From sequence record MZ574431.2: 64,000 nt of DNA, one strand, 5' to 3'. Both the position numbers and the translations under genes were made by a program. Below the pieces are notes generated by a model that was not told where the DNA came from, searched no databases, and worked only from the letters and a program-made list of their open reading frames with translations. The first letter of the stretch is position 1, and each line of letters opens with the position of its first letter. Below, in pieces: positions 16,630 through 59,820 of the stretch.

Positions 16630-16937
16630 GCATCGAAGACCTCGAAGAAGACCTCGCCAAGCGCTTCGATGGCGGTGGCTATGCGGTGCGCAAGTACGCT
16701 CGCGAGCAGTTTGGGCGCATGACCCTGGACATGCCAGCCCTGCCTGATCTTCCCGACACCGACGAGGTTGATACCGCCATTGCCTTCGCCAACCACTTTG
16801 GCTGGTTCGAGACCAAGCTGGACGTCGACGCCGTGATCGCCGCCTGGAGCTTGGTTGAGACCTTCCGCCAAGCTCCGGCCGGCGCAATGGACGCCCTGCT
16901 GGCCCGCATCAACGATCACATGGAGAGTCTGAAATGA
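16626..16937 (+). CDS. hypothetical protein (paralogue family)
   Basis: LDVDAVIAAWSLVETFRQ motif. Confidence 0.75.
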   Translation: MSIEDLEEDLAKRFDGGGYAVRKYAREQFGRMTLDMPALPDLPDTDEVDTAIAFANHFGWFETKLDVDAVIAAWSLVETFRQAPAGAMDALLARINDHMESLK

Positions 16938-17593
16938 CCCCGACCCGCCGCCACCTCCTCGCCGCGATCGCTGCCACCCCGCTCCTGGGTTCGACCGCCC
17001 TGGCCGCGCCGGCCTTCAGCAACATTCGGCCCTCGACGATCGAGGCCCTGCTGATCGATCGCGTCTCATCCGGCGACCTGACCTTCGTCGCCCGTAACCC
17101 GACCATGCTGGCCCTGGCGCGCGCCATGGCTGACGGCATGTACCTGACCCGCCAGAGCGTCACCACGCCGGGCGCGCCGCCGGTCTTCGACGTCACCAAG
17201 CTGGGCGTGCGCCACGGTCACTACCTCCTGGCCGAGCGCCTCTATGACGGCGCCGGCGGCAAGCGCGCGGTCCAACTGATGCGCGACTGTTACGCGCTGG
17301 CCAAAGCGCGTCAGAGCCTTCCCGTCGCCGAGCAGGTGACGCTCGTGCCGCAGGCGCAGCGTAATCTCATCCAGCAGGTCCGCGACGGCGGTCGAACGAT
17401 CCTGACCCTGGACCACGCCCGCGAGAACGACTGGCGAATGGCCCTCCTGCGCGCGGGCAAGCTTCGTCCCTACGGCTACCTGATGACCACCAACTACTTC
17501 ATCGTCGAGGCCACACCGGCCTTCCTGACGGAGAAGGGCAAGGCCCAGGCCAAGCGCATGGCCGAACTGCGAGCCGAACTGGGTCTGGCATGA
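16934..17593 (+). CDS. Tat-signal protein, paralogue 1
   Basis: TRRHLL + hydrophobic core + ALA; DWRMALLRAGKLRPYGY. Confidence 0.75.
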   Translation: MTPTRRHLLAAIAATPLLGSTALAAPAFSNIRPSTIEALLIDRVSSGDLTFVARNPTMLALARAMADGMYLTRQSVTTPGAPPVFDVTKLGVRHGHYLLAERLYDGAGGKRAVQLMRDCYALAKARQSLPVAEQVTLVPQAQRNLIQQVRDGGRTILTLDHARENDWRMALLRAGKLRPYGYLMTTNYFIVEATPAFLTEKGKAQAKRMAELRAELGLA

Positions 17594-17901
17594 GCCACGC
17601 CACCCACACCCTGGGCGCGCGGTACTACTACACCGTCGAGGCGACGGCGCGGCGCAAGAGCCCGACGGGCGGGGCCGACACCACGTGGCCGATCTTCCTG
17701 GCCGGCAGCCGCCATGTGCTGCACGGCTGGGCGCAGTCGCCGGGGCACCTGACCAGTTCGTTCCCCTTCCAGTTCCAGCGGCTGGAGGAGGCCAAGGCCG
17801 CCGCCTATGCGCCGGTCACCGGCTTCACCGTCGAGAACGTGGTCATCTCCCTGACCATCATCGAAACCAAGTCCACCACCAAGATCGTCGAGCACGTCTG
17901 A
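17590..17901 (+). CDS. hypothetical phage protein
   Basis: FQRLEEAK motif; coupled. Confidence 0.8.
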   Translation: MSHATHTLGARYYYTVEATARRKSPTGGADTTWPIFLAGSRHVLHGWAQSPGHLTSSFPFQFQRLEEAKAAAYAPVTGFTVENVVISLTIIETKSTTKIVEHV

Positions 17902-17902
17902 T

Positions 17903-18241
17903 ATGACGACCCTTAATCCCCGCAAGACCGTCTCCGAGACGAGCGAACACTATATCACCGTCAGGGCGCTCGCCCTCTTCGACAAGCCACGCGGCGAAGT
18001 CGGCTCCGCGCCGGTCGAGTACAAGGGCCGCGATGGACGCATGGCCGGCTGGCGGCTGGACGAGCAGCCTTTCCTCGCCTTACGTGGTGAGCTTGAACCC
18101 TATCGCTTCAAGACCCTGGAGGAGGCCCAGCAGGTCGTCGCCCAAATGCAGGTCTCGGGCTTCAAGGTCATCGATGTCGTCTATCGTGAGCATCGGGTAA
18201 CGACCGTCCGCTCCGTCGAGATCACCGAGCACCACGAATGA
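17903..18241 (+). CDS. hypothetical phage protein
   Basis: FKTLEEAQ motif; coupled. Confidence 0.8.
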   Translation: MTTLNPRKTVSETSEHYITVRALALFDKPRGEVGSAPVEYKGRDGRMAGWRLDEQPFLALRGELEPYRFKTLEEAQQVVAQMQVSGFKVIDVVYREHRVTTVRSVEITEHHE

Positions 18242-18543
18242 ACCTCACTCCCTACAAGGTCGTGATCCGCCGCTACCAGCACGAGGGCTTGAACGGCGAC
18301 CGCTCCACCCGCAAGGTTCCCTACTTCAACTACGAGGTGGTGGCGATCCGCGAGGACGGCATGGAGATGACCGGCAAGAAGCTCGACGGCTATGACGGCT
18401 TCCACTGCGCGCCGGCCTCCGACCGCCTCAAGGAGGCCGAGGACTTCGCCCTGGACCTGTCCGACTTCCTCCAGGCCGAATTGCTGCCAATGGAAACCTA
18501 CCAGCCCTTCGTCACCACCTCCTGGAAAAAGGTCGAGTCATGA
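18238..18543 (+). CDS. hypothetical phage protein
   Basis: ATGA overlap. Confidence 0.8.
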   Translation: MNLTPYKVVIRRYQHEGLNGDRSTRKVPYFNYEVVAIREDGMEMTGKKLDGYDGFHCAPASDRLKEAEDFALDLSDFLQAELLPMETYQPFVTTSWKKVES

Positions 18544-19235
18544 TCTCCCGCCGTACTCTTCTGCGCGCCGCCGGCGCCACCGCCGCGATCATCGCCCTGC
18601 CCGCCCACGCCGCCCTGCCGACCCTGGACGAGCGCATCGACGCGATCCTGGCCAAGCACATCCACAACGGCGACCTGGAGATCAGCGGCAAGGCCATCGA
18701 TGGCGAGGTGATCGCCGCCATGGTCGAGGATTGGCTGATCGACCGGACCATCCTCTTCCACCGCGTCTGGGTGACGAGCGAGGGTAAGACGATCGCCGAT
18801 CAGGTCTACAAGATCAACAGGCGCGGTATTGAGCGCGGGCAGATCGCCCTGGCCCATCGCCTGAGTCCACACGCCGGCATGCTGATGCGCACCGCGTTCG
18901 AACTGAACCAGAGCCCGCTTCGTCGGCAGGACTATCCCGAGGTGGCCCAGCGCGCCCGCAAGCGCGTCTTCACCGACCCGCCGATCGGCGGCGCCCTTCC
19001 CGTCGTCGTCCTGACGCCTGAGCAGGCCGAGGCCGGCGACTGGCGCATGCACGCGCTGCGCAACGCCTATCTGCGCCCGGTGCGCTATGGCAAGACCCTG
19101 CTGGCCCTGGAGCGCACGCCGCTGGGCGTGGAATGGTTCGAGAGCCACGAAGCCTTCCTGAACCAAGTTCAGTCGGTCACCGCCCGCGTCTCCCATCAAC
19201 ACCCCAACCTTAGCTATGGCATCGGCAAGGCATGA
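18540..19235 (+). CDS. Tat-signal protein, paralogue 2
   Basis: SRRTLL + AHA cleavage; DWRMHALRNAYLRPVRY..ERTP. Confidence 0.75.
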   Translation: MISRRTLLRAAGATAAIIALPAHAALPTLDERIDAILAKHIHNGDLEISGKAIDGEVIAAMVEDWLIDRTILFHRVWVTSEGKTIADQVYKINRRGIERGQIALAHRLSPHAGMLMRTAFELNQSPLRRQDYPEVAQRARKRVFTDPPIGGALPVVVLTPEQAEAGDWRMHALRNAYLRPVRYGKTLLALERTPLGVEWFESHEAFLNQVQSVTARVSHQHPNLSYGIGKA

Positions 19236-19522
19236 GCGAGCGCGAACTGGTCATCGTCGACAAGGAGCGCGAGGTCGTCGAGCTTCTGGAAGGCGGCTAT
19301 CTCTGGACGGTGCTGTCCTGGCGCGTCGATGACTATGCGCCGACCCTGATCGAGAAGTTCCAGAGCGCGGACTGGGCGATCGTCTGCGCCGAGCAGCGGG
19401 TCGCCGAAGGCTACCACCGGGTCGAGGCCTATCACGCCATCGCCTTCTCGTTCTGGACCGACGCGGTCGAACAGGAGCGGCTCTATCTGATGGAAGAACA
19501 GCGCCAAGAGGTATCTGGCTGA
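19232..19522 (+). CDS. hypothetical phage protein
   Basis: ATGA overlap. Confidence 0.8.
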   Translation: MSERELVIVDKEREVVELLEGGYLWTVLSWRVDDYAPTLIEKFQSADWAIVCAEQRVAEGYHRVEAYHAIAFSFWTDAVEQERLYLMEEQRQEVSG

Positions 19523-19884
19523 TGCGACCCCTGCGCCGCAACGACATCGTCCATGTCCCCAGCCTGCACGACGGCGTGCCGGGCGAGCGCTGCTTCTTCG
19601 GCCGCGTCTGGCGCCGGGTCTCGCCGACCGAAGTGGAGGTCATCTGCACCGGCCGCTACGTCCAGGTCTTCAAGGACGAATGGCTGGAGCGATCCGACTA
19701 CAAGGGCACCTGGGTCACCTATGGCGCGGTGCGCGAGAAGCACCCCTTCTGGCTGCCCATGTCCTCCCTGCGCAAGCTCAAGCAGCGCGCGGCCTATTAC
19801 GACGACCGCGTCTGGCGCAAGAAGAAGGACCGCCGGCGCGAGCGCTTTCACGCCTACATCCGCGCCGAGGAGGCGCAAGCCTGA
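19522..19884 (+). CDS. basic hypothetical protein
   Basis: TGATG overlap. Confidence 0.8.
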   Translation: MRPLRRNDIVHVPSLHDGVPGERCFFGRVWRRVSPTEVEVICTGRYVQVFKDEWLERSDYKGTWVTYGAVREKHPFWLPMSSLRKLKQRAAYYDDRVWRKKKDRRRERFHAYIRAEEAQA

Positions 19885-20072
19885 TGGGACTCTTCGCCCT
19901 GCCCTATGATGTCAAGACGCGCCAGGAAGCCATCGACTGCCTGAAGGCCAACATCGCCATCTGGGACGACTACGCCGCCAAAGGCCAGGACCTGGACTAT
20001 CTCCTGGGCTTCATGCAGGTCTCTCTCAACAAGGCCAAGGAGCTACCCTTCGTCGTGGAGCCCGCGTCGTGA
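19884..20072 (+). CDS. hypothetical protein (MGLFALPY...)
   Basis: TGATG overlap. Confidence 0.75.
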   Translation: MGLFALPYDVKTRQEAIDCLKANIAIWDDYAAKGQDLDYLLGFMQVSLNKAKELPFVVEPAS

Positions 20073-20085
20073 GGGCGCCGCCCCG

Positions 20086-20262
20086 GTGGGCTATGTCGTC
20101 ACGGTCCACAAGTGCCAGGGCGGGACCTACGAAGACGTCGTCACCATCATGCCCGACGGCAAGACCCCGGTCGAACTCAGGATGGGTGAAGGCCTCATCT
20201 TGCGTGGCTGCGACTGGCTCCATCTCCACAACCCGCGAGACCTCCCATGCCCCTCGTCCTGA
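20086..20262 (+). CDS. small hypothetical protein missed by ORF track (VGYVVTVHKCQGG...)
   Basis: GC3-rich frame; may start at 20069 if one C is missing at 20081-84. Confidence 0.55.
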   Translation: MGYVVTVHKCQGGTYEDVVTIMPDGKTPVELRMGEGLILRGCDWLHLHNPRDLPCPSS

Positions 20263-20657
20263 CCGATGAAGAACTGCGCCGCGCCTCCTCGTGGTTTGGC
20301 GCCTGCCAGGACCTGGGCATCAGCTTCGAGAGCCCCGACGCCGAATTGGTGATCAAGCTCTACGAGCACCTGGGCATCCACGTGCCGTTCTCGGTCCGCG
20401 CCATGGTTCGCCCGCCCGAGCCGTTCGTCGTCTATTTCGAGGACTGCGACGCGTCCGTCGAGGAGGTCTACAGCCAGACCGACACCTTGGACTTGATCAT
20501 CGCCCTGGGTGAGATCGCCCGCTTCAATCGTGTCGTGTCCCTGGGTCCCTACGCCTACCGGCTGGAGTGCGACATCGTCGCCCTGGAGGAGGTCCTGAAC
20601 CATCACCCCGACTGGTCGCTGACGACGCCCGACGCCTACAAGGCCATGACCGGATGA
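20247..20657 (+). CDS. hypothetical phage protein
   Basis: GC3-rich codons. Confidence 0.8.
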   Translation: MPLVLTDEELRRASSWFGACQDLGISFESPDAELVIKLYEHLGIHVPFSVRAMVRPPEPFVVYFEDCDASVEEVYSQTDTLDLIIALGEIARFNRVVSLGPYAYRLECDIVALEEVLNHHPDWSLTTPDAYKAMTG

Positions 20658-21055
20658 GCACGGTCGACTGGTCCTTTGAGGACGGCCGGCGCGAGCAGGC
20701 TCAGCGCCGCGAGAAGTGGTTCCAGAACGTCCTGATCAACGCCAGCTACAACGACCTCGTGGGCATCACCGATGCGCGCGAAGGCTTGCGAGGCCTCTGG
20801 CGCGATGGGCGGCTCTACTGGTGGAACCCGTGGCTGGCCACCCATGCCCAGGCCGGCCGCTGGCTTGGCAACGAGGGACGCCTTCTCGACGATGAGGTGG
20901 AGATGCACGTCGATGAAGACGGCATGCTGCACCTGTCGGCCTGGACCTGGGAGACCTTGCACAAGGCCGAGGCCCATCCTTCCTTGGCCGAGCCACAGAC
21001 GCGCCGGTTTGTCAGGCCCGCGCCACCGCCAGAATGGGAGGTTGACGCGGCCTAG
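20654..21055 (+). CDS. hypothetical protein (MSTVDW...)
   Basis: ATGA overlap. Confidence 0.8.
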   Translation: MSTVDWSFEDGRREQAQRREKWFQNVLINASYNDLVGITDAREGLRGLWRDGRLYWWNPWLATHAQAGRWLGNEGRLLDDEVEMHVDEDGMLHLSAWTWETLHKAEAHPSLAEPQTRRFVRPAPPPEWEVDAA

Positions 21056-21080
21056 GTCATCGTGCGAGAAACCCGTTGCC

Positions 21081-22160
21081 ATGACCCTACCCGTCGACAC
21101 CAAAGCCAAGCTCCTCTCCCGCGACCAGTTTCGCGAGGCCGTGTTCGCGCGCGACGGTCATGCTTGCGTTTTCTGCAAGCGCCGAGCCGAGGACACGCCC
21201 GAGGGCAAGCTGGATGCGCATCACATTCTCGAACGACGCCTCTTCCAGGCGCCCCACGAGAAGGGCGGCTACTTCCTGGGCAATGGCGCGACGGTCTGCG
21301 AGGACCATCACCGCCAGTGCGAGTCGACCCAAATTTCGGTCGACGAGGTCTATGCCGCCTGCGGCATCACCCGCCGGGTTCTGCCCGATCATCTCTATTC
21401 GGACCTCGACTACGACAAGTGGGGCAACATCGTCACGCCCAGCGGAGAGCGCCTGAAGGGCGAACTCTATGGCGACGAGAGCGTCCAGAAGATTATGGCC
21501 CAGTGCGCGCCGCCCCCGGTCTTCAAGCCCTACGTCAAATATCCGCGCACCAATCACCTGCCCTGGTCGCCGGGGCTCAACGATGACGACCGGGTCTTGA
21601 AGGACCTCTCGGCCTTCATCGGCGAGCGCGTGATCGTCACCACCAAGATGGATGGCGAGCAGACCAACATGTACCGCGACCACTACCATGCCCGGTCGGT
21701 GGAGAGCGCTCACCACGAGAGCCAGGGCTGGGCCAAGAACTTCTGGTCGCAGATTTGCGGCGACATCCCCGAGGGCTGGCGCGTCTGCGGCGAGAACCTC
21801 TACGCTAAGCACTCGATCGCCTATGACGCCCTGCCTACCTACTTCATGGGCTTTGGCGTCTGGAACGATCTCAACCAGTGCCTGTCCTGGGACGACACGC
21901 TCGAATGGTTCGAGCTTCTGGGCGTCACGCCGGTGCCGGTGATCTATGACGGCGTCTTCGACGAGGCCGCCATCAAGGCCCTCTATGACGCCAAGACCTG
22001 GGACACCTGCGAGGGCTATGTGCTGCGCGTGGCGCGTTCGTTCTCCTACGGCGAGTTCCGCGCCTGCGTCGGTAAGTTCGTCCGCGCCGGCCACGTCCAG
22101 ACAACCAAGCACTGGAAACACGGCCAGCGGGTCGAGAAGAACGGGCTAGTCAGCGCATGA
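21081..22160 (+). CDS. HNH domain-RNA ligase (Rnl2-like) fusion
   Basis: CVFC..DAHH...NGATVCEDHH HNH; ligase motifs TKMDG, GENL, EGYVLR, KFVR. Confidence 0.85.
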   Translation: MTLPVDTKAKLLSRDQFREAVFARDGHACVFCKRRAEDTPEGKLDAHHILERRLFQAPHEKGGYFLGNGATVCEDHHRQCESTQISVDEVYAACGITRRVLPDHLYSDLDYDKWGNIVTPSGERLKGELYGDESVQKIMAQCAPPPVFKPYVKYPRTNHLPWSPGLNDDDRVLKDLSAFIGERVIVTTKMDGEQTNMYRDHYHARSVESAHHESQGWAKNFWSQICGDIPEGWRVCGENLYAKHSIAYDALPTYFMGFGVWNDLNQCLSWDDTLEWFELLGVTPVPVIYDGVFDEAAIKALYDAKTWDTCEGYVLRVARSFSYGEFRACVGKFVRAGHVQTTKHWKHGQRVEKNGLVSA

Positions 22161-22915
22161 GCAAGGGACCGCCCAGGCGCTTCGACCACGACGAGATGAT
22201 CGATCTCTGGCGGGCCGGCCACAATTCCATCGCCCTGGCCGCTCGCTATGGCGTCACGCCTAGCGCGATCAGTCGCGCCATCAGCCATGCCCGCAGCAAG
22301 GACCCGACCATCCCGCGCCGCAAGCGCGTCGACCGCGAGGCCGTGGTCACTGCCTATCAGGCCGGCGCCAGCGAAGTGGCCATCGCCAAGGACCTGGGCC
22401 ATTCTCTGGCCGTGGTCTACCGCGCCCTGGCCCAGGCCGGCGTGCCGCTGCGTCCGCGCCCCGGCTCGGTTGATGTCCAGGCCGCCGCCGACCTACGCAA
22501 GCAAGGCCTGACGATCGACCAGATCGCCGAGGCCTTGAGCGCCTCGCGTCATGGCGTGCGCCGCGCTCTGACCCGCGCGGGCCTCTCCGCACGCCCCTCC
22601 CACACCCACGCCGGACCTGCGCCTCGCTTCGATCACGTCGAAGCCCATCGGCTCTATGCGGCCGGCGGGGAGAGCTTCTCGTCCCTGGCCCGCAGGTTTG
22701 GCGTCTCGCGCCAAGCCATGCAGGACATGCTGGTGCGCAACTATGGCGTCACGGCCAAGCGGCGCACCTATCGTCCCGTGGTCGACAAAGTCCGCAAGAT
22801 CGATCCGTTCGAAGCCCGCGCGCTCTATGCCACCGGCGACTGGACCTATCGCGCCTTGGCCGCCAAGTACGGCGCCACCTGCCGGGCAGTGGAGCGCGCG
22901 ATCAAGGGCGTTTGA
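22157..22915 (+). CDS. protein with five tandem HTH repeats
   Basis: repeated D..A..L(Y/W)..G.S...A...GVS...V...L units. Confidence 0.8.
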   Translation: MSKGPPRRFDHDEMIDLWRAGHNSIALAARYGVTPSAISRAISHARSKDPTIPRRKRVDREAVVTAYQAGASEVAIAKDLGHSLAVVYRALAQAGVPLRPRPGSVDVQAAADLRKQGLTIDQIAEALSASRHGVRRALTRAGLSARPSHTHAGPAPRFDHVEAHRLYAAGGESFSSLARRFGVSRQAMQDMLVRNYGVTAKRRTYRPVVDKVRKIDPFEARALYATGDWTYRALAAKYGATCRAVERAIKGV

Positions 22916-22921
22916 TCCTGC

Positions 22922-22960
22922 AAGAAAGCTGTTGACAGCCCTGTTGCCGGCGTGCTTTAT
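22922..22960 (+). promoter_or_regulatory. sigma70-type promoter, left-arm class
   Basis: AAGAAAGCTG-TTGACA(22932)-N17-CTTTAT. Confidence 0.7.
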
Positions 22961-22995
22961 GGCTCCAACGCAACAACGCAGAAGGAGCCGCCGTC

Positions 22996-23172
22996 TTGAA
23001 AACCGCTGACCTGGGCCAGGGCTGGTACGCCAACGCCAACGACGACGGCAGCTTCACGGTGCGCAACCCCGACAAGGGCCAGCGCATCAACCTGACGGCC
23101 GACGAGGCCAAGCGCTTTGTCGAACTCTACCGCGAGGCCGAGGCGCAAGTCGCACAAGGCGTCCAGTCGTGA
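22996..23172 (+). CDS. 58-aa hypothetical protein missed by ORF track (MKTADLGQGW...)
   Basis: RBS AAGGAG, TTG start, GTGA overlap with next gene. Confidence 0.7.
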   Translation: MKTADLGQGWYANANDDGSFTVRNPDKGQRINLTADEAKRFVELYREAEAQVAQGVQS

Positions 23173-23606
23173 AGATCGGCGCCAACGATCAGTTCGTGCT
23201 CGAAGCCGTCCACGGCGGCTGGTCGGTGCTGTTCCGCGCCGAGGTCGGCAACCAGAGCAACAGCCTGGAGATCGCCCGCTTCCTGGTGGCCTACTACCCC
23301 GACGAGGTCATCACCCTGGGCTCGGCTCAGGCCTTCGTCGAGAAGATGAACGCCACGCTGCAAGCCGAGCGCCGGCATAACCAGGGCCTGATGGCGCCCG
23401 AGTGGGATATGCGCGGCAGCTACGCGGCCGGCGATCGGGTGACCTTCGAGGGCGAGGTCTACGAGTACGTCTCGCGCACGCCCCGCGACTTCAGCGACGA
23501 CGACAAGGTCGCCATGACCCCGAAGTATTCGGGCCTGTGGCAGGACGTCAAGAACGAGCGCGCGCTGGCCTATGCCCGCAGCCTCGTGGCGGACAACGCC
23601 CTCTGA
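23169..23606 (+). CDS. hypothetical protein, C-terminal carbohydrate-binding-like motif
   Basis: WDMRGSYAAGDRVTFEGEVYE resembles ChiC-type W..Y..GD.V...G..Y module. Confidence 0.6.
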   Translation: MKIGANDQFVLEAVHGGWSVLFRAEVGNQSNSLEIARFLVAYYPDEVITLGSAQAFVEKMNATLQAERRHNQGLMAPEWDMRGSYAAGDRVTFEGEVYEYVSRTPRDFSDDDKVAMTPKYSGLWQDVKNERALAYARSLVADNAL

Positions 23607-23863
23607 TGCCCAAGGCCTACAACCTCACGGGCGGCCTGAAGCTGGTGGTCGAGATGCGTGGTCAGTACACGATCACGCGCGCCGGCAAGACCCTGGGCAG
23701 CGGCTCGTTCTGGCGCGGCAAGAACGCGGCCGGCGACATCGCCACCTACTGCCGGGTCTGGGACCACAACAACGTCGATCTGGGCATCAACGCTGTCTAC
23801 TTCAGCGACTTCAAGCGCGAGGTCGACTGGTACTGGACCCACGGCGAAGGCAAGGACCTCTAG
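23606..23863 (+). CDS. hypothetical protein (MPKAYN...)
   Basis: TGATG overlap. Confidence 0.8.
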   Translation: MPKAYNLTGGLKLVVEMRGQYTITRAGKTLGSGSFWRGKNAAGDIATYCRVWDHNNVDLGINAVYFSDFKREVDWYWTHGEGKDL

Positions 23864-23865
23864 CC

Positions 23866-24093
23866 ATGGGAACCTACGGCCTCAACGAACTCATGCGCCG
23901 GCGCCGCGAGCAACTGACGGCCGAAGCCCTGGAGCGTAAGGACGATCCCTATTTCCAGGCCCTGGAGCGCGAGCGCATCGCCGACGAGATCGCCATGGGC
24001 CTGCGCAACGCCGACGGTGAATGGCTGTGGGCCGACACCCCTGCTTCCGACGAGGCGGAAGACGAAATCCTTCAGGACGAGGACGAAGAATGA
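23866..24093 (+). CDS. hypothetical protein, acidic tail
   Basis: RBS-like spacing; coupled to next gene. Confidence 0.75.
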   Translation: MGTYGLNELMRRRREQLTAEALERKDDPYFQALERERIADEIAMGLRNADGEWLWADTPASDEAEDEILQDEDEE

Positions 24094-24407
24094 TCCGCGA
24101 GAACCCCCGCTTCGAGAAGACCTTCACCGTCGGCGACATGATCGACCTGCTCCAGGCCCACGATCGCAAGCTGCCGCTGGGCATCTTCAGTCCGTCCATG
24201 GGCGTGATGTTCCCGCCCCAGGTCAAGGCCGAGACGATCAACACGATCGGCTTCAAGTCCGAGGACGCGCGCGGCCGGATCGGCTTCAACCTGCATGATC
24301 CCTCCGAACTGAAGAACCCCATGCTCTGCGCCAAGACCGTCCGCAAGCTCAACGGCCCGCCCGTCAAGATCGTGCTGATCCACGCGCCCAAGGAATATGT
24401 GGGCTGA
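24090..24407 (+). CDS. hypothetical protein (MIRENP...)
   Basis: ATGA overlap. Confidence 0.8.
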   Translation: MIRENPRFEKTFTVGDMIDLLQAHDRKLPLGIFSPSMGVMFPPQVKAETINTIGFKSEDARGRIGFNLHDPSELKNPMLCAKTVRKLNGPPVKIVLIHAPKEYVG

Positions 24408-24413
24408 TCTTGC

Positions 24414-25460
24414 ATGGGCGACTGGAAGCAACAGCTTGTGGCCCAGGCCAAGGGCATGCCCTTGGACATCGAGCCGCTGGTGGCTTCGCCACCCAGACCG
24501 CCCGCGCCGCAACCCTTGCGCCGGCGCCGCCCGATCCTGACCGACGCCGAGCGCCAGATGCTTGGGATCGGCGTGGGTCCGACCCCAAAACAACCCGGCG
24601 GCAAGCGTAAGTTCAAGACGCCCCGCACCCGTCCATTCAAAGGTCCGCGCGCCTGCGTGCTGTTGGTCAGGGAGGCCAAGGTCCTGAATAAGAAACCGCG
24701 CATGGCCCGCCTGCGAGGCCGGAAGGTTCCGATGCTGGCGACCCGCACGCCGTTCAACTACGACAAGGCCATGGACCTGCGCGAAGCGGGAATCTCGGTG
24801 CAGAACATCGCCACGGCGCTGGATGTGTCGCCGCTGGCGATCCGGGCCTTCGTCAACACCTACGCCAGCCACGTCAAGGCCACGCGAGGGTCCAACCTCT
24901 CCGAAGAGGTTCAAGACCAGATCGTCAAGACCTATGCGCAAGGCGGCGTCACCCAGGCCCAGGTGGCCAAGCAGTTTGGCGTCAGCGGTCCGACAGTCTG
25001 CAACATTATCCGGCGGCGTGCGCCAGGGCTAGGCAAGTCCATGCGGCGCTATGCCTTCCACCCCAACCGCAGACTGGACATCGAAGAGGCGGCGGCTGCC
25101 TACGAGGCGGGTCAGACCTTGCGCGAGATCGCCAAGGCCCAAGGGGTGTCACAGAACGCCGTCTACCTGAACCTGAAGACCTATGCGCCACAGGTGATGG
25201 AGGCCAAGCGTCTGGAGCGCCTCGCCGCTAAGGCTGCCAAGGAAGCCCAGCGGCTCACCAAGCTGAAGGCCAAGGAACCGACCCTCGGTTATAGCTTCAA
25301 CGCGACCCTGGCGATCCGCACCCTGCGCGCCGGCGGCTCGCGCCAAAACGTGCTCGACTACTTCAAGATCAGTCGAAGCACGCTGGCTCGGATGCTGAGC
25401 AAGGAAGCGCCCGATCTCCTGCGCCCCAGAGCGGGACGCCCCCACAAGGAGACGACGTGA
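24414..25460 (+). CDS. basic protein with four tandem HTH repeats
   Basis: GISVQNIATALDVS, GVTQAQVAKQFGVS, GQTLREIAKAQGVS, GGSRQNVLDYFKIS. Confidence 0.75.
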   Translation: MGDWKQQLVAQAKGMPLDIEPLVASPPRPPAPQPLRRRRPILTDAERQMLGIGVGPTPKQPGGKRKFKTPRTRPFKGPRACVLLVREAKVLNKKPRMARLRGRKVPMLATRTPFNYDKAMDLREAGISVQNIATALDVSPLAIRAFVNTYASHVKATRGSNLSEEVQDQIVKTYAQGGVTQAQVAKQFGVSGPTVCNIIRRRAPGLGKSMRRYAFHPNRRLDIEEAAAAYEAGQTLREIAKAQGVSQNAVYLNLKTYAPQVMEAKRLERLAAKAAKEAQRLTKLKAKEPTLGYSFNATLAIRTLRAGGSRQNVLDYFKISRSTLARMLSKEAPDLLRPRAGRPHKETT

Positions 25461-25500
25461 CGCCCTGAAAAGGTGACGCCGTGAGGATGTGACGACCTGA
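25457..25500 (+). repeat. 3 x 12-bp direct repeat, 16-bp period
   Basis: GTGACGCCCTGA(25457), GTGACGCCGTGA(25473), GTGACGACCTGA(25489). Confidence 0.7.
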
Positions 25501-25605
25501 CAGGCGCCGGCCGATTGAAAGTGAGGCCGCGTCTGATTGAAGACTTGAAATCGCGAGCGGGTCGCCGAAGGCGGCGCGTGATGCGGCCATGAACAAGGAA
25601 CCTGG

Positions 25606-26438
25606 ATGACCCAAACTGCTGAAGCTCTCGCCCGCGCCAATTATGACCGCCTTGCGGCCATGGACATGTTCAAGTCCAATCCGATGCCGGCCTGGGACGC
25701 CATGCCTGATAGCCAGCGCGCGGCCTGGGTGCAGCAGGCGGCCGAACAGATCGAGCGCGAGCGCCCCAGGGTCCTGTCCCCGCTCGATCGCGACATCATC
25801 GACCTACTTCAGGAAGAAAGCGCCGAGGTCCTGGAGGAACTGGCGCCGCACATGGCCGCCGCCATCGCCCGGATCGTCAAGCTGGCCAACAAGGCCAAGC
25901 GCTTTGGCAACGTCAAGAACCCGTTCGCGGGCGAGGACACCAAGCCCAACTACGAAAAGCTCGAAGACGAGATCGGCGACTTCGGCGCCCTGGTGGCGAT
26001 CCTCGGCGCGCGCGGCGTGCTCTCCAAGGAGCGCATCAACCAGCGCATCGAGTGGAAGGTGGGCATGCTCACCACCCATGGCTCGATCGACTGGTCCAAG
26101 GATGATCAGCCGACCGCCGCCCCGAAGACCCCGCCACCGTCCAGGCCCGCTACGAGGACAAGGCCGCCTACCAGGAGATGATCCTGCGCAAGGCCCTGAC
26201 CGGCCAGTCCGCGCCGCACGAGGGCGTCTGGGTCGAAGCCCTGCGTCGGCTCAACGACTTCCTGGCCGAGGATACCCCGCCGCTGTCGACGGCCCTGGAC
26301 CTGATCGGCCTGCGCAACAACTTCCTGGCGAACCGCGACTACAGCGAGATCGACCTGTTCGAGCAGGCCGTCGTCATGCTGCTGGCCAAGCTGAAGGACA
26401 CCCATCCGGGCAACATCCTCGATCCGGCCGGCGCGTAA
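25606..26438 (+). CDS. MazG-like NTP pyrophosphohydrolase with C-terminal extension (apparent frameshift at 26120-23)
   Basis: LLQEESAEVLEEL...LEDEIGD EEXXE motifs; one extra C joins 25606 to the 26178..26438 frame. Confidence 0.7.
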
Positions 26439-26476
26439 GAAAACTGTTGACAACTTCTTGGGGCGGACGTAGAAGG
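26437..26476 (+). promoter_or_regulatory. sigma70-type promoter, left-arm class
   Basis: AAGAAAACTG-TTGACA(26447)-N17-TAGAAG. Confidence 0.7.
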
Positions 26477-26502
26477 GACGCAACAGCAGCCCAGGAGACC
26501 TC

Positions 26503-26922
26503 ATGACCTACGCCCTGCCCGACCTCGCGAAGATCACCTTCCACGACAAGAAGGTCGAGCGGTTCGCCGAGTTCCTGATCGGCTGCATCAACATCGGCTC
26601 CGCCAGCATCCAGGGCTTCAAGACGGCTCTGGACAGCGACCCGTTCGCCGCCTGCGAGGACATCGCCAAGCTGAAGTTGGCCGCCGCCCGCCTACGCACC
26701 GCCAAGTGCTATCTGGAGCATGTCCTGGACCTCGCCGCAAACGGCCCGGACAAGACCTGGGCCTACATCGGCGCGATGATCCGCAAGGACCTGGACACCC
26801 GCGTCGTCTACGCCGCCAGTCGCCCGCCGCGCTCGTCCAACCCCGAGTCCGATGACATGGCGGCGGTGGAACTGCGCGCCCTGGCTGAACTGCTCAAGCG
26901 CTTCCAGGACGGTGAGTTCTGA
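26503..26922 (+). CDS. hypothetical phage protein
   Basis: RBS AGGAG. Confidence 0.85.
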   Translation: MTYALPDLAKITFHDKKVERFAEFLIGCINIGSASIQGFKTALDSDPFAACEDIAKLKLAAARLRTAKCYLEHVLDLAANGPDKTWAYIGAMIRKDLDTRVVYAASRPPRSSNPESDDMAAVELRALAELLKRFQDGEF

Positions 26923-27293
26923 TGAACCTCGACCCGCGCATCGGCATGCTCCAGACCGAACGGGGTCTGGCCTTCTACGCCTATCCCCACGGCTATGACG
27001 CGCCGGCCGTGCGCGGCAGCCGCGAGAAGGTCGAGTTCGCCCTGGGCCTTCGCCATCGACGCTTCGCGCGGATGGCCGACGTCCCACTCGGCCCGTACCT
27101 GAGCGTCTATGACGTCGAGATCACCGTGCGCAGCTACAGCCACGGCTATCACCGCTACACGCGCGGCCCCTATCACTACGAGGGCATCCGTGCCCCGTCC
27201 AAATCCGCCGCCAACGACGAGGCCCGCCGACTGCATGGTCACAAGGGCCATGGCCTACCGTCGGCCAAAGCCACCCTGCGCCTGGACGCCTGA
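26922..27293 (+). CDS. hypothetical phage protein
   Basis: TGATG overlap. Confidence 0.8.
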   Translation: MNLDPRIGMLQTERGLAFYAYPHGYDAPAVRGSREKVEFALGLRHRRFARMADVPLGPYLSVYDVEITVRSYSHGYHRYTRGPYHYEGIRAPSKSAANDEARRLHGHKGHGLPSAKATLRLDA

Positions 27294-27296
27294 TCC

Positions 27297-27677
27297 ATGA
27301 AGAAGACCCACAAGATCACGGCCGACGAGGCCGCCATCATCCGCAAGGCCGCCACCAAGCTGGTCGGCAACGCCCGCGTGCGCCTCGAACTCAACCTCCA
27401 CGCCAACGACGCCGACCAGGAGGGCTACAACACCCTGGCCCTGGGCGAGGAGCACAGCACCGTTGACACCTGCGACTGGGGCCAGTTCCGCAACCGCGTC
27501 TTCCCACTGGTCGACGGCGCCGCGCGCCTGGACATCTCGATCTACACCGTGCGCTCCAAGGACGGCGACTTCGAAGTCCTCAACTACATCTACCCGATCT
27601 GGGAAGGCGGCAAGCTCGTGCGCATCGAGGGCCTGTCGCGCATCGGGGCTGGCTACGCGCCGATCTGGGGCCTCTAG
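27297..27677 (+). CDS. hypothetical phage protein
   Basis: GC3-rich codons. Confidence 0.85.
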   Translation: MKKTHKITADEAAIIRKAATKLVGNARVRLELNLHANDADQEGYNTLALGEEHSTVDTCDWGQFRNRVFPLVDGAARLDISIYTVRSKDGDFEVLNYIYPIWEGGKLVRIEGLSRIGAGYAPIWGL

Positions 27678-27679
27678 CC

Positions 27680-27934
27680 TTGGCGACCAAGCCTAGGCCC
27701 GTCGGCGTCCGAGGCCACACCGAGATCATCGAGGCGGGTGGCACGCGCGTGCGCTTCTTCTGCCCGCACGGCCATACCCAGATCGAGGACCTGGGACGCA
27801 AGTCCCTGCCGATTTCCAAGCGCCTGTCACCGGGCGCTGTGAAGCTACTTGCGCGCGTCTGGGGCAAAGGGCATGCTGGTGTGACCTTCACCTGTAAGGC
27901 CTGCACCAAGGAAAACCATGCCCTCTCGTCGTGA
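27680..27934 (+). CDS. Zn-ribbon hypothetical protein
   Basis: CPHGH...CKAC. Confidence 0.7.
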   Translation: MATKPRPVGVRGHTEIIEAGGTRVRFFCPHGHTQIEDLGRKSLPISKRLSPGAVKLLARVWGKGHAGVTFTCKACTKENHALSS

Positions 27935-28571
27935 CCTGATCACCGGCGCCCTGGCGCTAGCCGCCGCCTCGGCCCTGCCGGCGCTCTCCCTGGCCTCCAC
28001 GCCCATCGAGCACCGCGCCGAGAAGGTCCTGGCCAAGGCCGCCCATGCCGGCGGCGTCCTGCCGTTCGATGAGCCAATGGACGCCGACGTGCGTCTGTGG
28101 CTCCAGCAACAGGACCTGATGCGCGAGCGCTATCGCGGCTCCGATGGTCGCCAGGACCTGGGACTGACCCCAGCGGGGCTGGTGGTCGGGCAGCTATCCC
28201 TGGCGCGTGCCCTGCACCCGGAGGCTGGTGAACTCCTGGCCCGGCTGCTGGCCGTCGCGCCCAACCCCTACAGCATCTCGATCCTGCGCGGCGATGACGT
28301 CTATCATCGCAACGATATGCTGGCGCCGCCGGCGGCCGACGGCACCTTGCCCCACCACTTCATCCACGCCCAGACCGATCCCGCCAACTGGGCGATCAGC
28401 AGCCTGATGCTGGGCCACCTGCGCCCGGTCGGCTACGTGGCCAATCTGCGTGATCGAGAGGCCAGCGGTCACCTGCTGCTGGAGCGCACGCCGCTGATGC
28501 TCCAGCACTGGACCCACAACCCCGACCTGGGCAAGCCTTACCGCTACCAGCCCGTGATCATCTGGGACTAG
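27918..28571 (+). CDS. Tat-signal protein, paralogue 3
   Basis: SRRDLI + SLA; NWAISSLMLGHLRPVGY..LLERTP. Confidence 0.75.
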   Translation: MPSRRDLITGALALAAASALPALSLASTPIEHRAEKVLAKAAHAGGVLPFDEPMDADVRLWLQQQDLMRERYRGSDGRQDLGLTPAGLVVGQLSLARALHPEAGELLARLLAVAPNPYSISILRGDDVYHRNDMLAPPAADGTLPHHFIHAQTDPANWAISSLMLGHLRPVGYVANLRDREASGHLLLERTPLMLQHWTHNPDLGKPYRYQPVIIWD

Positions 28572-28764: not shown

Positions 28765-28776
28765 TTCCACCCGCCG

Positions 28777-28808
28777 AAGGCGCATCCTTGTGGTGCGCCT
28801 TTTTCTTT
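28777..28808 (+). terminator. rho-independent terminator
   Basis: AAGGCGCA-loop-TGCGCCTT + TTTTCTTT. Confidence 0.85.
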
Positions 28809-59320: not shown

Positions 59321-59608
59321 ATGACGAAACAAGCCCCAAAGCGCCGCAAGCGCTACCCGCCCAAGAGCGACGCGGCCAAGGCCCGCGCCGCCGCCAAGAG
59401 CAAGGCGTTTTTCGCCCGCCACGCCCTCAAGGCCACCGAGGCGGCTATCGCCGCCATGGCGGCGGGCGATCAAAAGGCCGTCCAACGCCACGCCAAGGAC
59501 GCCCGGCGCCTCAATCGCTGGATGTGCCACAAGCGCGACATCGCCGCCGCCTTCAAGGCCGTGTTCGACATCCGCGCCGCCGCTCAAGCCCTGCGAACCG
59601 CCGCATGA
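59321..59608 (+). CDS. basic Ala-rich hypothetical protein
   Basis: leader ACGGGAGACACCCC-ATG. Confidence 0.8.
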   Translation: MTKQAPKRRKRYPPKSDAAKARAAAKSKAFFARHALKATEAAIAAMAAGDQKAVQRHAKDARRLNRWMCHKRDIAAAFKAVFDIRAAAQALRTAA

Positions 59609-59820
59609 TCCGCCGCCCCGCCCTCATGACCTGCATCGCCGGCGCCGCCCTCATCCTGTCGGGCGTGGCCGTTTCGGCCGCCAGCGCCCCGGAAAAGCGG
59701 GTTCTCGTCGGTCAATACTGCGACGGCGACCCCGTGCGCCTCTATGGCCTGGAGGACGGCGAGGAAGCCGCCCAAGCCTGCGCCATCGTCGAGGTCCACG
59801 CCCTGCCGAAAGGACTCTGA
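59605..59820 (+). CDS. small exported protein
   Basis: ATGA overlap; signal peptide ending AASA; Cys pair. Confidence 0.7.
   Translation: MIRRPALMTCIAGAALILSGVAVSAASAPEKRVLVGQYCDGDPVRLYGLEDGEEAAQACAIVEVHALPKGL

Follow-up and report, generated by a model that had tools for sequence, protein, structure and literature searches.

A phage-only protein family of giant Caulobacter phages joins a conserved, probable Tat-type signal to a winged-helix-like predicted body

The stretch of DNA analysed here, referred to below as the window, comprises 64,000 nucleotides of sequence record MZ574431.2 (312,338 bp). A megablast search matched it at 100% identity to Caulobacter phage J4, a giant phage of the genus Bertelyvirus (Dolichocephalovirinae) that grows on C. 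vibrioides CB15 and has a genomic G+C content of 65%. Unless marked otherwise, positions are those of the window, obtained by subtracting 248,000 from the record position. An earlier note, made from the letters of the window, had singled out three open reading frames (ORFs) as dispersed paralogues with twin-arginine translocation (Tat) signal peptides. The coordinates and + strand that it gave are exact, and the ORFs correspond to the GenBank coding sequences gp442, gp446 and gp467 (prefix CcrJ4_), all of them named "hypothetical protein". These three genes and the family to which they belong are the subject of this study. The features are as follows, with clades A to C taken from the family tree described below and pI standing for isoelectric point.

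16934..17593, + strand: gp442, 219 aa, clade A; predicted signal peptide at residues 1-24 (nt 16934-17005), with T-RR-H-LL and with ALA before A; predicted mature part 195 aa, pI 10.0, net charge +9.
18540..19235, + strand: gp446, 231 aa, clade B; predicted signal peptide at residues 1-24 (nt 18540-18611), with S-RR-T-LL-R and with AHA before A; predicted mature part 207 aa, pI 9.0.
27918..28571, + strand: gp467, 217 aa, clade C; predicted signal peptide at residues 1-26 (nt 27918-27995), with S-RR-D-LI and with SLA before S; predicted mature part 191 aa, pI 6.2, net charge -4.
28776..28802, + strand: intrinsic-terminator-like hairpin (11-bp stem, then a T run) just 3' of gp468, which probably ends the transcription unit containing gp467.

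In each ORF the start codon is the first possible one after a stop, so the three N-termini cannot be longer than annotated. The start of gp442 overlaps the stop of gp441 and has a GGAG-type ribosome site 10 nt upstream, and the ends of this gene overlap the stop and start codons of the adjoining genes; gp467 is preceded by an AAGGA ribosome site. All three genes are found upstream of the 24.7-kb right terminal repeat, where many short genes follow one another on the same strand and often overlap. The word "dispersed" describes gp467, which stands 8.7 kb further on, but hardly gp442 and gp446, which are separated by just 0.95 kb with three small genes between them.

The N-termini carry the three elements that had been proposed: a twin-arginine (RR) motif, a hydrophobic core and an AxA-like site. 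After the RR motif come 17-24 uncharged residues rich in Ala, Leu, Gly and Thr, then a proline, and then ALA, AHA or SLA. The 11 other full-length members that we identified begin D/T/N/S-RR-x-[FLI]-[LIF], and the polar-RR-x-hydrophobic-hydrophobic start is thus kept in 14 of 14 full-length members at a body identity of 19-40% across clades. The earlier note had tied its Tat assignment to conservation of the RR in homologues; it is invariant in every full-length one. A family alignment of 11 sequences, which share about 30% identity with gp446, has no more than nine invariant columns, and R4 and R5 occupy two of them. Two genes of phage CcrSC, gp457 and gp481 (L005:918-1523 and L005:12287-13069), have GenBank starts inside or after the signal peptide; for both, an upstream in-frame ATG restores the start (M-D-RR-S-F and M-T-T-RR-A-L-L), as in the CcrBL9 orthologues. 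Three metagenomic members have the same RR start.

The rest of the signal behaves differently from the RR. Across the family the hydrophobic region (h-region) varies freely in sequence and length and yet stays hydrophobic and is never charged, with a mean of about 2.1 over its best 10 residues on the Kyte-Doolittle scale. The c-region that follows has a near-invariant proline and, by pattern, an AxA-type site in every member (ALA, AHA, SLA, AQA or AKA), and in several members it holds a Lys or His, as in signals that avoid the general secretory (Sec) pathway. Because sequence and length drift while the charge-free character, the proline and the AxA site stay, the N-terminal segment evolves as a targeting peptide does and not as a structural helix would, and judged by the alignment the signal is the most conserved feature of the family. 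A lipoprotein signal was considered and rejected, there being no Cys at or near the cleavage region and hence no lipobox. When PDB sequences were searched with the family profile, the matches fell within its first 30 positions and were to signal regions only, none of them significant; they include those of the NapA precursor, a copper nitrite reductase and a tyrosinase co-factor protein, which are known Tat substrates.

We scanned for ORFs in which RR and two hydrophobic residues lie close to the N-terminus and which also have 12 or more uncharged residues and are hydrophobic enough. Of the 1182 start-to-stop ORFs that reach 80 aa in the six frames of the window, gp442, gp446 and gp467 alone fit. 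Applied to the whole of J4 (8519 candidates of at least 60 aa), the scan returned the three family genes, two other annotated small genes (one of them counted twice, once per terminal repeat), one membrane-like ORF on the + strand and four spurious-looking ORF entries on the - strand. A chance origin of the pattern is excluded, and by these scans the observation is real and cannot be put down to the abundance of Arg and Ala that goes with this G+C content.

The paralogy that had been claimed for the three proteins is borne out by BLASTP (gp442/gp446, E 3e-11; gp446/gp467, 1e-9; gp442/gp467, 7e-4), by which they are genuine, but old and distant, paralogues. The two body motifs that had been read from the three sequences recur in the 11-sequence consensus as YxLTxxGxxxGQxxLAxRLxxxAGxLM and DWRMxxLRxGxLRP...LERTP, and no other blocks of the family alignment are better conserved. 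In J4, a profile built from the three proteins detects these three copies and no more. When 50,697 phage records were searched with tblastn, relatives were found only in giant Caulobacter phages: three copies each in J4, C1, RB23 and BL47, three each in CcrSC and CcrBL9 (29-42% identity), and one each in CcrColossus and CcrPW (34-36% identity). Phage C2 and one record labelled Bertelyvirus sp. have the gp467 type only, confirmed for C2 with a hidden Markov model (HMM), and an HMM search found no member in phiCbK or CcrSwift. A HMMER search of 1.84 billion representative proteins gave 10 matches, all of them of this family, with the new members coming from one metagenome sample, and found no cellular homologue. 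The two metagenome contigs examined hold runs of short same-strand genes homologous to those that surround the J4 copies; in one of them an RNA ligase gene lies close by. A word-indexed homology search returned the near-identical C1 orthologue alone. As far as these searches reach, the family is small, phage-only and confined to giant Caulobacter-type phages. A maximum-likelihood tree has three clades, typified by gp442 (A), gp446 (B) and gp467 (C); the branches of clade C are long, and the single Colossusvirus copy groups in clade B.

To describe the mature part we modelled gp446 with AlphaFold2 using the family alignment, which gave a mean predicted local distance difference test score (pLDDT) of 84.6 and a predicted template modelling score of 0.77. 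The N-terminal helix is modelled at a pLDDT of about 50, detached and not packed on the body. Residues 134-192 are predicted to follow the canonical winged-helix order (helix 134-145, strand 155-158, helices 160-164 and 168-174, strands 178-183 and 188-192), and residues 29-92 would form a variant with one helix fewer (helix 29-43, strand 47-49, helix 55-63, strands 73-78 and 84-92). Two predicted helices (94-122) link the units, and a long C-terminal helix (194-220) follows. In structural searches with this model all top neighbours were winged helices of the MarR, PadR, TFIIE and Vps25 types, at middling scores. The folds of gp442 and gp467 are assigned by homology and from a low-confidence ESM Atlas model of gp442, which lies nearest to MarR/PadR clusters. 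The suggestion that the LTxxG motifs look winged-helix-like thus gains support from the two predicted units and from the neighbours, at scores that are middling only, and we call the fold winged-helix-like with moderate confidence.

Sequence profiles do not place the mature part in any family. Searches of Pfam, NCBIfam, PHROGs and PADLOC gave no family match, the helix-turn-helix (HTH) and winged-helix families of Pfam included, and because no sequence profile supports it we do not assign the family to any HTH family. An ESM Atlas feature search gave no usable match for gp442, gp446 or gp467, and a Foldseek search of BFVD gave significant matches only to the family's own members. The PDB profile search described above likewise returned nothing for the mature part. 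Aligning the N-terminal half with the C-terminal half by hhalign gave a probability of 0.2%, that is, no internal repeat at the sequence level. The conserved motif residues (W168, L173, L178, R179, P180, E191 and T193) sit in the second unit, in its third helix and its wing; since they are mostly hydrophobic or capable of salt bridges, they may merely hold the fold. The family conserves neither a catalytic set of Cys, His or Ser nor a cofactor motif, and the mature proteins contain 0-3 cysteines, which makes catalysis or cofactor binding unlikely. The clades differ in charge: clade A is strongly basic (pI 10-10.5, net charge +9 to +10), clade B mildly basic, and clade C neutral to acidic and without basic residues in the would-be recognition helix. 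These differences argue against a single common DNA-binding function.

The fold raises the question of whether the proteins are exported at all. They could instead be cytoplasmic MarR/PadR-like DNA-binding regulators that dimerise through an N-terminal hydrophobic helix. Such a role would agree with the top structural neighbours, all of them transcription-factor winged helices, with the placement of the gp442 model, with the basic charge of clades A and B, and with some of the VIA alignments to MarR proteins, which begin at model residues 11-14, within the putative signal. It agrees poorly with the N-terminus itself: 17-24 charge-free residues between RR and the Pro/AxA segment are signal-like and unlike an amphipathic dimerisation helix, the stretch drifts in sequence and length with its character kept, and the modelled helix is of low confidence and unpacked. 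Nor does the body match any HTH family of Pfam, and clade C lacks both the basic overall charge and the basic recognition helix. We consider a cytoplasmic regulator very unlikely, and the proposed combination of a conserved Tat-type signal with a winged-helix-like body is supported by comparative evidence.

The genes are accessory, because copy number ranges from 0 to 3 among plaque-forming relatives on the same host. Between J4 and C2 the ratio of nonsynonymous to synonymous substitution rates (dN/dS) of gp467 is 0.36, against 0.17-0.51 for its neighbours, and by this measure its coding sequence is under purifying selection. At long range clade C is the fastest-diverging clade, with 31-34% identity against 51-92% for syntenic neighbours.

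In C. crescentus, TatA, TatB and TatC are each essential, localisation of PBP2 depends on them, and many Tat substrates are predicted (PMC12911857). We propose that each precursor folds in the cytoplasm with a cleavable twin-arginine signal peptide, that host TatBC would bind its RR motif, and that TatA-mediated transport would carry the folded protein across the inner membrane. Signal peptidase I would then cut at the AxA site, and the released product would be soluble in the periplasm and about 190 aa long. The use of Tat may reflect a compact winged-helix body that folds too quickly for Sec, or simply the prominence of Tat as an export route in this host. Since there is no conserved catalytic set and no cofactor motif, the mature protein would most likely act by binding, not catalysis. 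Candidate targets are the envelope machines by which these phages enter, wall enzymes and incoming DNA, and the three clades probably address different partners. We put the probability of Tat export of a soluble binder at roughly 0.6; export to the periplasm by any route is likely.

An essential Tat system also invites the thought that the signal is itself the weapon. Abundant decoys could saturate or jam TatBC, block host export (of PBP2, for example) and so freeze wall growth, and the presence of up to three copies per genome along with further genes encoding RR signals would suit such a scheme, as would the requirement for Tat in PBP2 localisation (PMC12911857). A decoy, however, needs its signal alone, and here purifying selection also acts on the mature domain, which is conserved; related phages with one copy or none also form plaques. 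Jamming of this kind strikes us as extremely unlikely.

Several observations weigh against the proposed mechanism and role. The signals, at 22-29 aa, are short for Tat. The Pfam TAT_signal model (PF10518) matches at E 9e-4 and 2e-4, which speaks for a Tat signal, but the scores of 19.6 and 21.3 bits stay under its gathering score of 22.7; 5 of 11 members match it at E up to 1, and TIGR01409 stays below its cut-off with a best E of 0.089. Proteins with winged-helix folds typically bind DNA in the cytoplasm, and clades A and B have a basic pI of 9-10.5. The dN/dS of gp467 lies within the range of its neighbours and gives no sign of positive selection, so that an arms-race signature, which we had considered, is rejected at short range. 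Finally, BLASTP finds no neighbouring gene conserved between the Bertelyvirus and Colossusvirus loci; the idea that a small, signal-less neighbour is co-exported as a hitchhiking partner finds no support for the same reason.

The first of these points are also those that an ordinary Sec signal would explain. If the proteins were exported unfolded through SecYEG, with RR serving merely as the positive charge of the n-region, a length nearer the Sec than the Tat average, sub-threshold scores against both Tat models and an h-region that is not especially weak in hydrophobicity would all fit. A Sec n-region, though, tolerates Lys or a single Arg, yet RR is found in every full-length member at the divergence given above and always in the same context, and several c-regions hold a basic residue of the Sec-avoidance type. 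We judge an ordinary Sec signal improbable. About equally improbable is an uncleaved signal, by which Tat or Sec would leave the protein anchored N-in, C-out with its body tethered to the periplasmic face of the inner membrane. The same arrangement has been proposed for Caulobacter PBP2, for which dependence on Tat and one N-terminal span are reported (PMC12911857), and cleavage in our family is predicted from the AxA pattern alone; on the other side, an uncharged stretch of 17-24 residues with a Pro near its end is short for a stable span, and the AxA-like site is conserved in every member. None of the four alternatives fits the invariant RR together with the conserved body as well as Tat export of a folded, soluble binder does.

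With Tat export as the preferred reading, the proteins would most likely modify or block an envelope component in infection, for example in superinfection exclusion or in protection of the envelope of the infected cell. Superinfection exclusion as such is a tentative assignment that we would hold to be doubtful at best. A more specific version, in which the basic proteins of clades A and B would be periplasmic DNA-binding winged-helix proteins that seize the DNA of a superinfecting phage as it crosses the periplasm, is a long shot. If true, it would mean an entry block at the DNA-transit step or a superinfection sensor for the lysis clock, as proposed for RI of phage T4, and it would show a classical DNA-binding fold at work outside the cytoplasm.

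Other genes with RR-type signals occur in the same phage group. In J4, gp528 (71 aa; 59605-59820, + strand) lies in the 24.7-kb terminal repeat, with a second copy in the left repeat (record 19990-20205); it begins M-I-RR-P-A-L-M-T-C, followed by a hydrophobic stretch, which could be an RR-type or a lipoprotein-like signal, and it is unrelated to the gp442/gp446/gp467 family and has no Pfam match. Outside the window, gp356 (91 aa; record 228242-228517; L026:1243-1518) has D-RR-S-F-L and a Gly/Ala-rich hydrophobic stretch and looks Tat-like. A second family of about 200 aa, beginning M-N-RR-E-[IL]-[LI], is encoded by phiCbK (JX100813; L030:508-1128, record about 174307) and CcrColossus (L032:333-932, record about 201832); when aligned by hhalign with the family described here, the first 25 residues, that is the signal, alone match. 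In CcrBL9, gp471 (L031:174-497), directly after the clade B gene, combines a UvrD_C_2-like motif (Pfam E 0.004) with an M-I-D-RR-T-L-L signal. The earlier note had called Tat signals unusual for non-structural proteins of lytic phages. This is reasonable, and a 2026 review of Tat export names no phage-encoded substrate, but within this group RR-signal proteins are not rare.

Several neighbours of the three genes can be described further. Two of the three genes between gp442 and gp446, gp443 and gp444 (17590-18241, + strand), are paralogues of one another (BLASTP E 6e-6); they have orthologues at the same place in CcrSC and in a metagenome contig, no signal and no known function. The gene gp453 (21080-22160, + strand; 1080 bp) is annotated in J4 as hypothetical only; its counterpart is annotated as RNA ligase in the RefSeq entries of CcrSC and CcrBL9, and a syntenic metagenome-contig gene of equal length carries the Pfam RNA_ligase domain. 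The 58-aa product of gp450 (20086-20262, + strand) is a stand-alone protein resembling the C-terminal motif of UvrD-like helicases; it scores 27.0 bits against Pfam UvrD_C_2, below the cut-off of 27.4, and its demonstrated homology is to CcrSC gp461 alone, which occupies the corresponding place in that phage.

Periplasmic phage proteins decide further infection and the timing of lysis, and few are understood. The presence of multiple unrelated RR-signal genes in this group points to a Tat-routed "phage periplasmic secretome" of giant Caulobacter phages. The present family is virus-only; its twin-arginine signal has survived deep divergence, in a host that cannot do without Tat, and is joined to a fold normally used for DNA binding or cytoplasmic scaffolds. 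The proposal lends itself to experiment: the host is a harmless model bacterium for which Tat depletion strains are available, and among natural phage variants some have three copies, some one and some none.

How does the family compare with known systems? It is a new protein family, and the kind of thing that it represents is a known one, phage accessory proteins acting in the periplasm. Among cellular proteins the nearest parallel is with Tat substrates that have no cofactor, such as AmiA/AmiC and SufI of E. coli and PBP2 of Caulobacter (PMC12911857), which share the polar-RR-x-hydrophobic-hydrophobic motif, the weakly hydrophobic h-region, the AxA site and the lack of cofactor residues; the Tat system of the phage's host is known to be active as well as essential. 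Unlike these, the family is encoded by a lytic giant phage, its Tat dependence is a prediction, and its mature domain has no sequence relation or clear structural relation to any cellular protein. Its winged-helix units recall MarR/PadR proteins and the tandem winged-helix scaffolds of TFIIE, Vps25/ESCRT-II, ScpB and kleisin C-terminal domains, in having the order helix-strand-helix-helix-strand-strand and two units per chain.

Among phage proteins, Spackle (Sp) and the antiholin RI of T4 are likewise small and non-structural, with cleavable signals, and work in the periplasm as binding proteins. The target of Sp is the tail lysozyme of a superinfecting phage, which it inhibits. RI binds the holin and is believed to respond to the periplasmic DNA that superinfection brings (PMC8385771). 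Our family matches neither of them in sequence or in fold (PHROGs; BFVD Foldseek), and searches of PHROGs, BFVD (Foldseek) and PADLOC found no homology to characterised exclusion or antiholin proteins of the Sp, Imm or RI type. A role in exclusion or lysis timing is suggested here by analogy. In the bacterial HXS defence system, the effector HxsA, which is processed and periplasmic, has been proposed to arrest phage DNA on its way in by binding it electrostatically (PMC13128918). It differs in being host-encoded and matured by radical S-adenosylmethionine (rSAM) enzymes, and in having a peptidoglycan-binding domain and HxS repeats with no homology to the family, but it sets a precedent for action on DNA in transit by a basic protein of the periplasm. 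In the signal itself the family resembles the other RR-signal proteins of giant Caulobacter and Brevundimonas phages, which have the same signal type with a similar A-[IL]-P...A-x-A ending, joined to unrelated mature parts.

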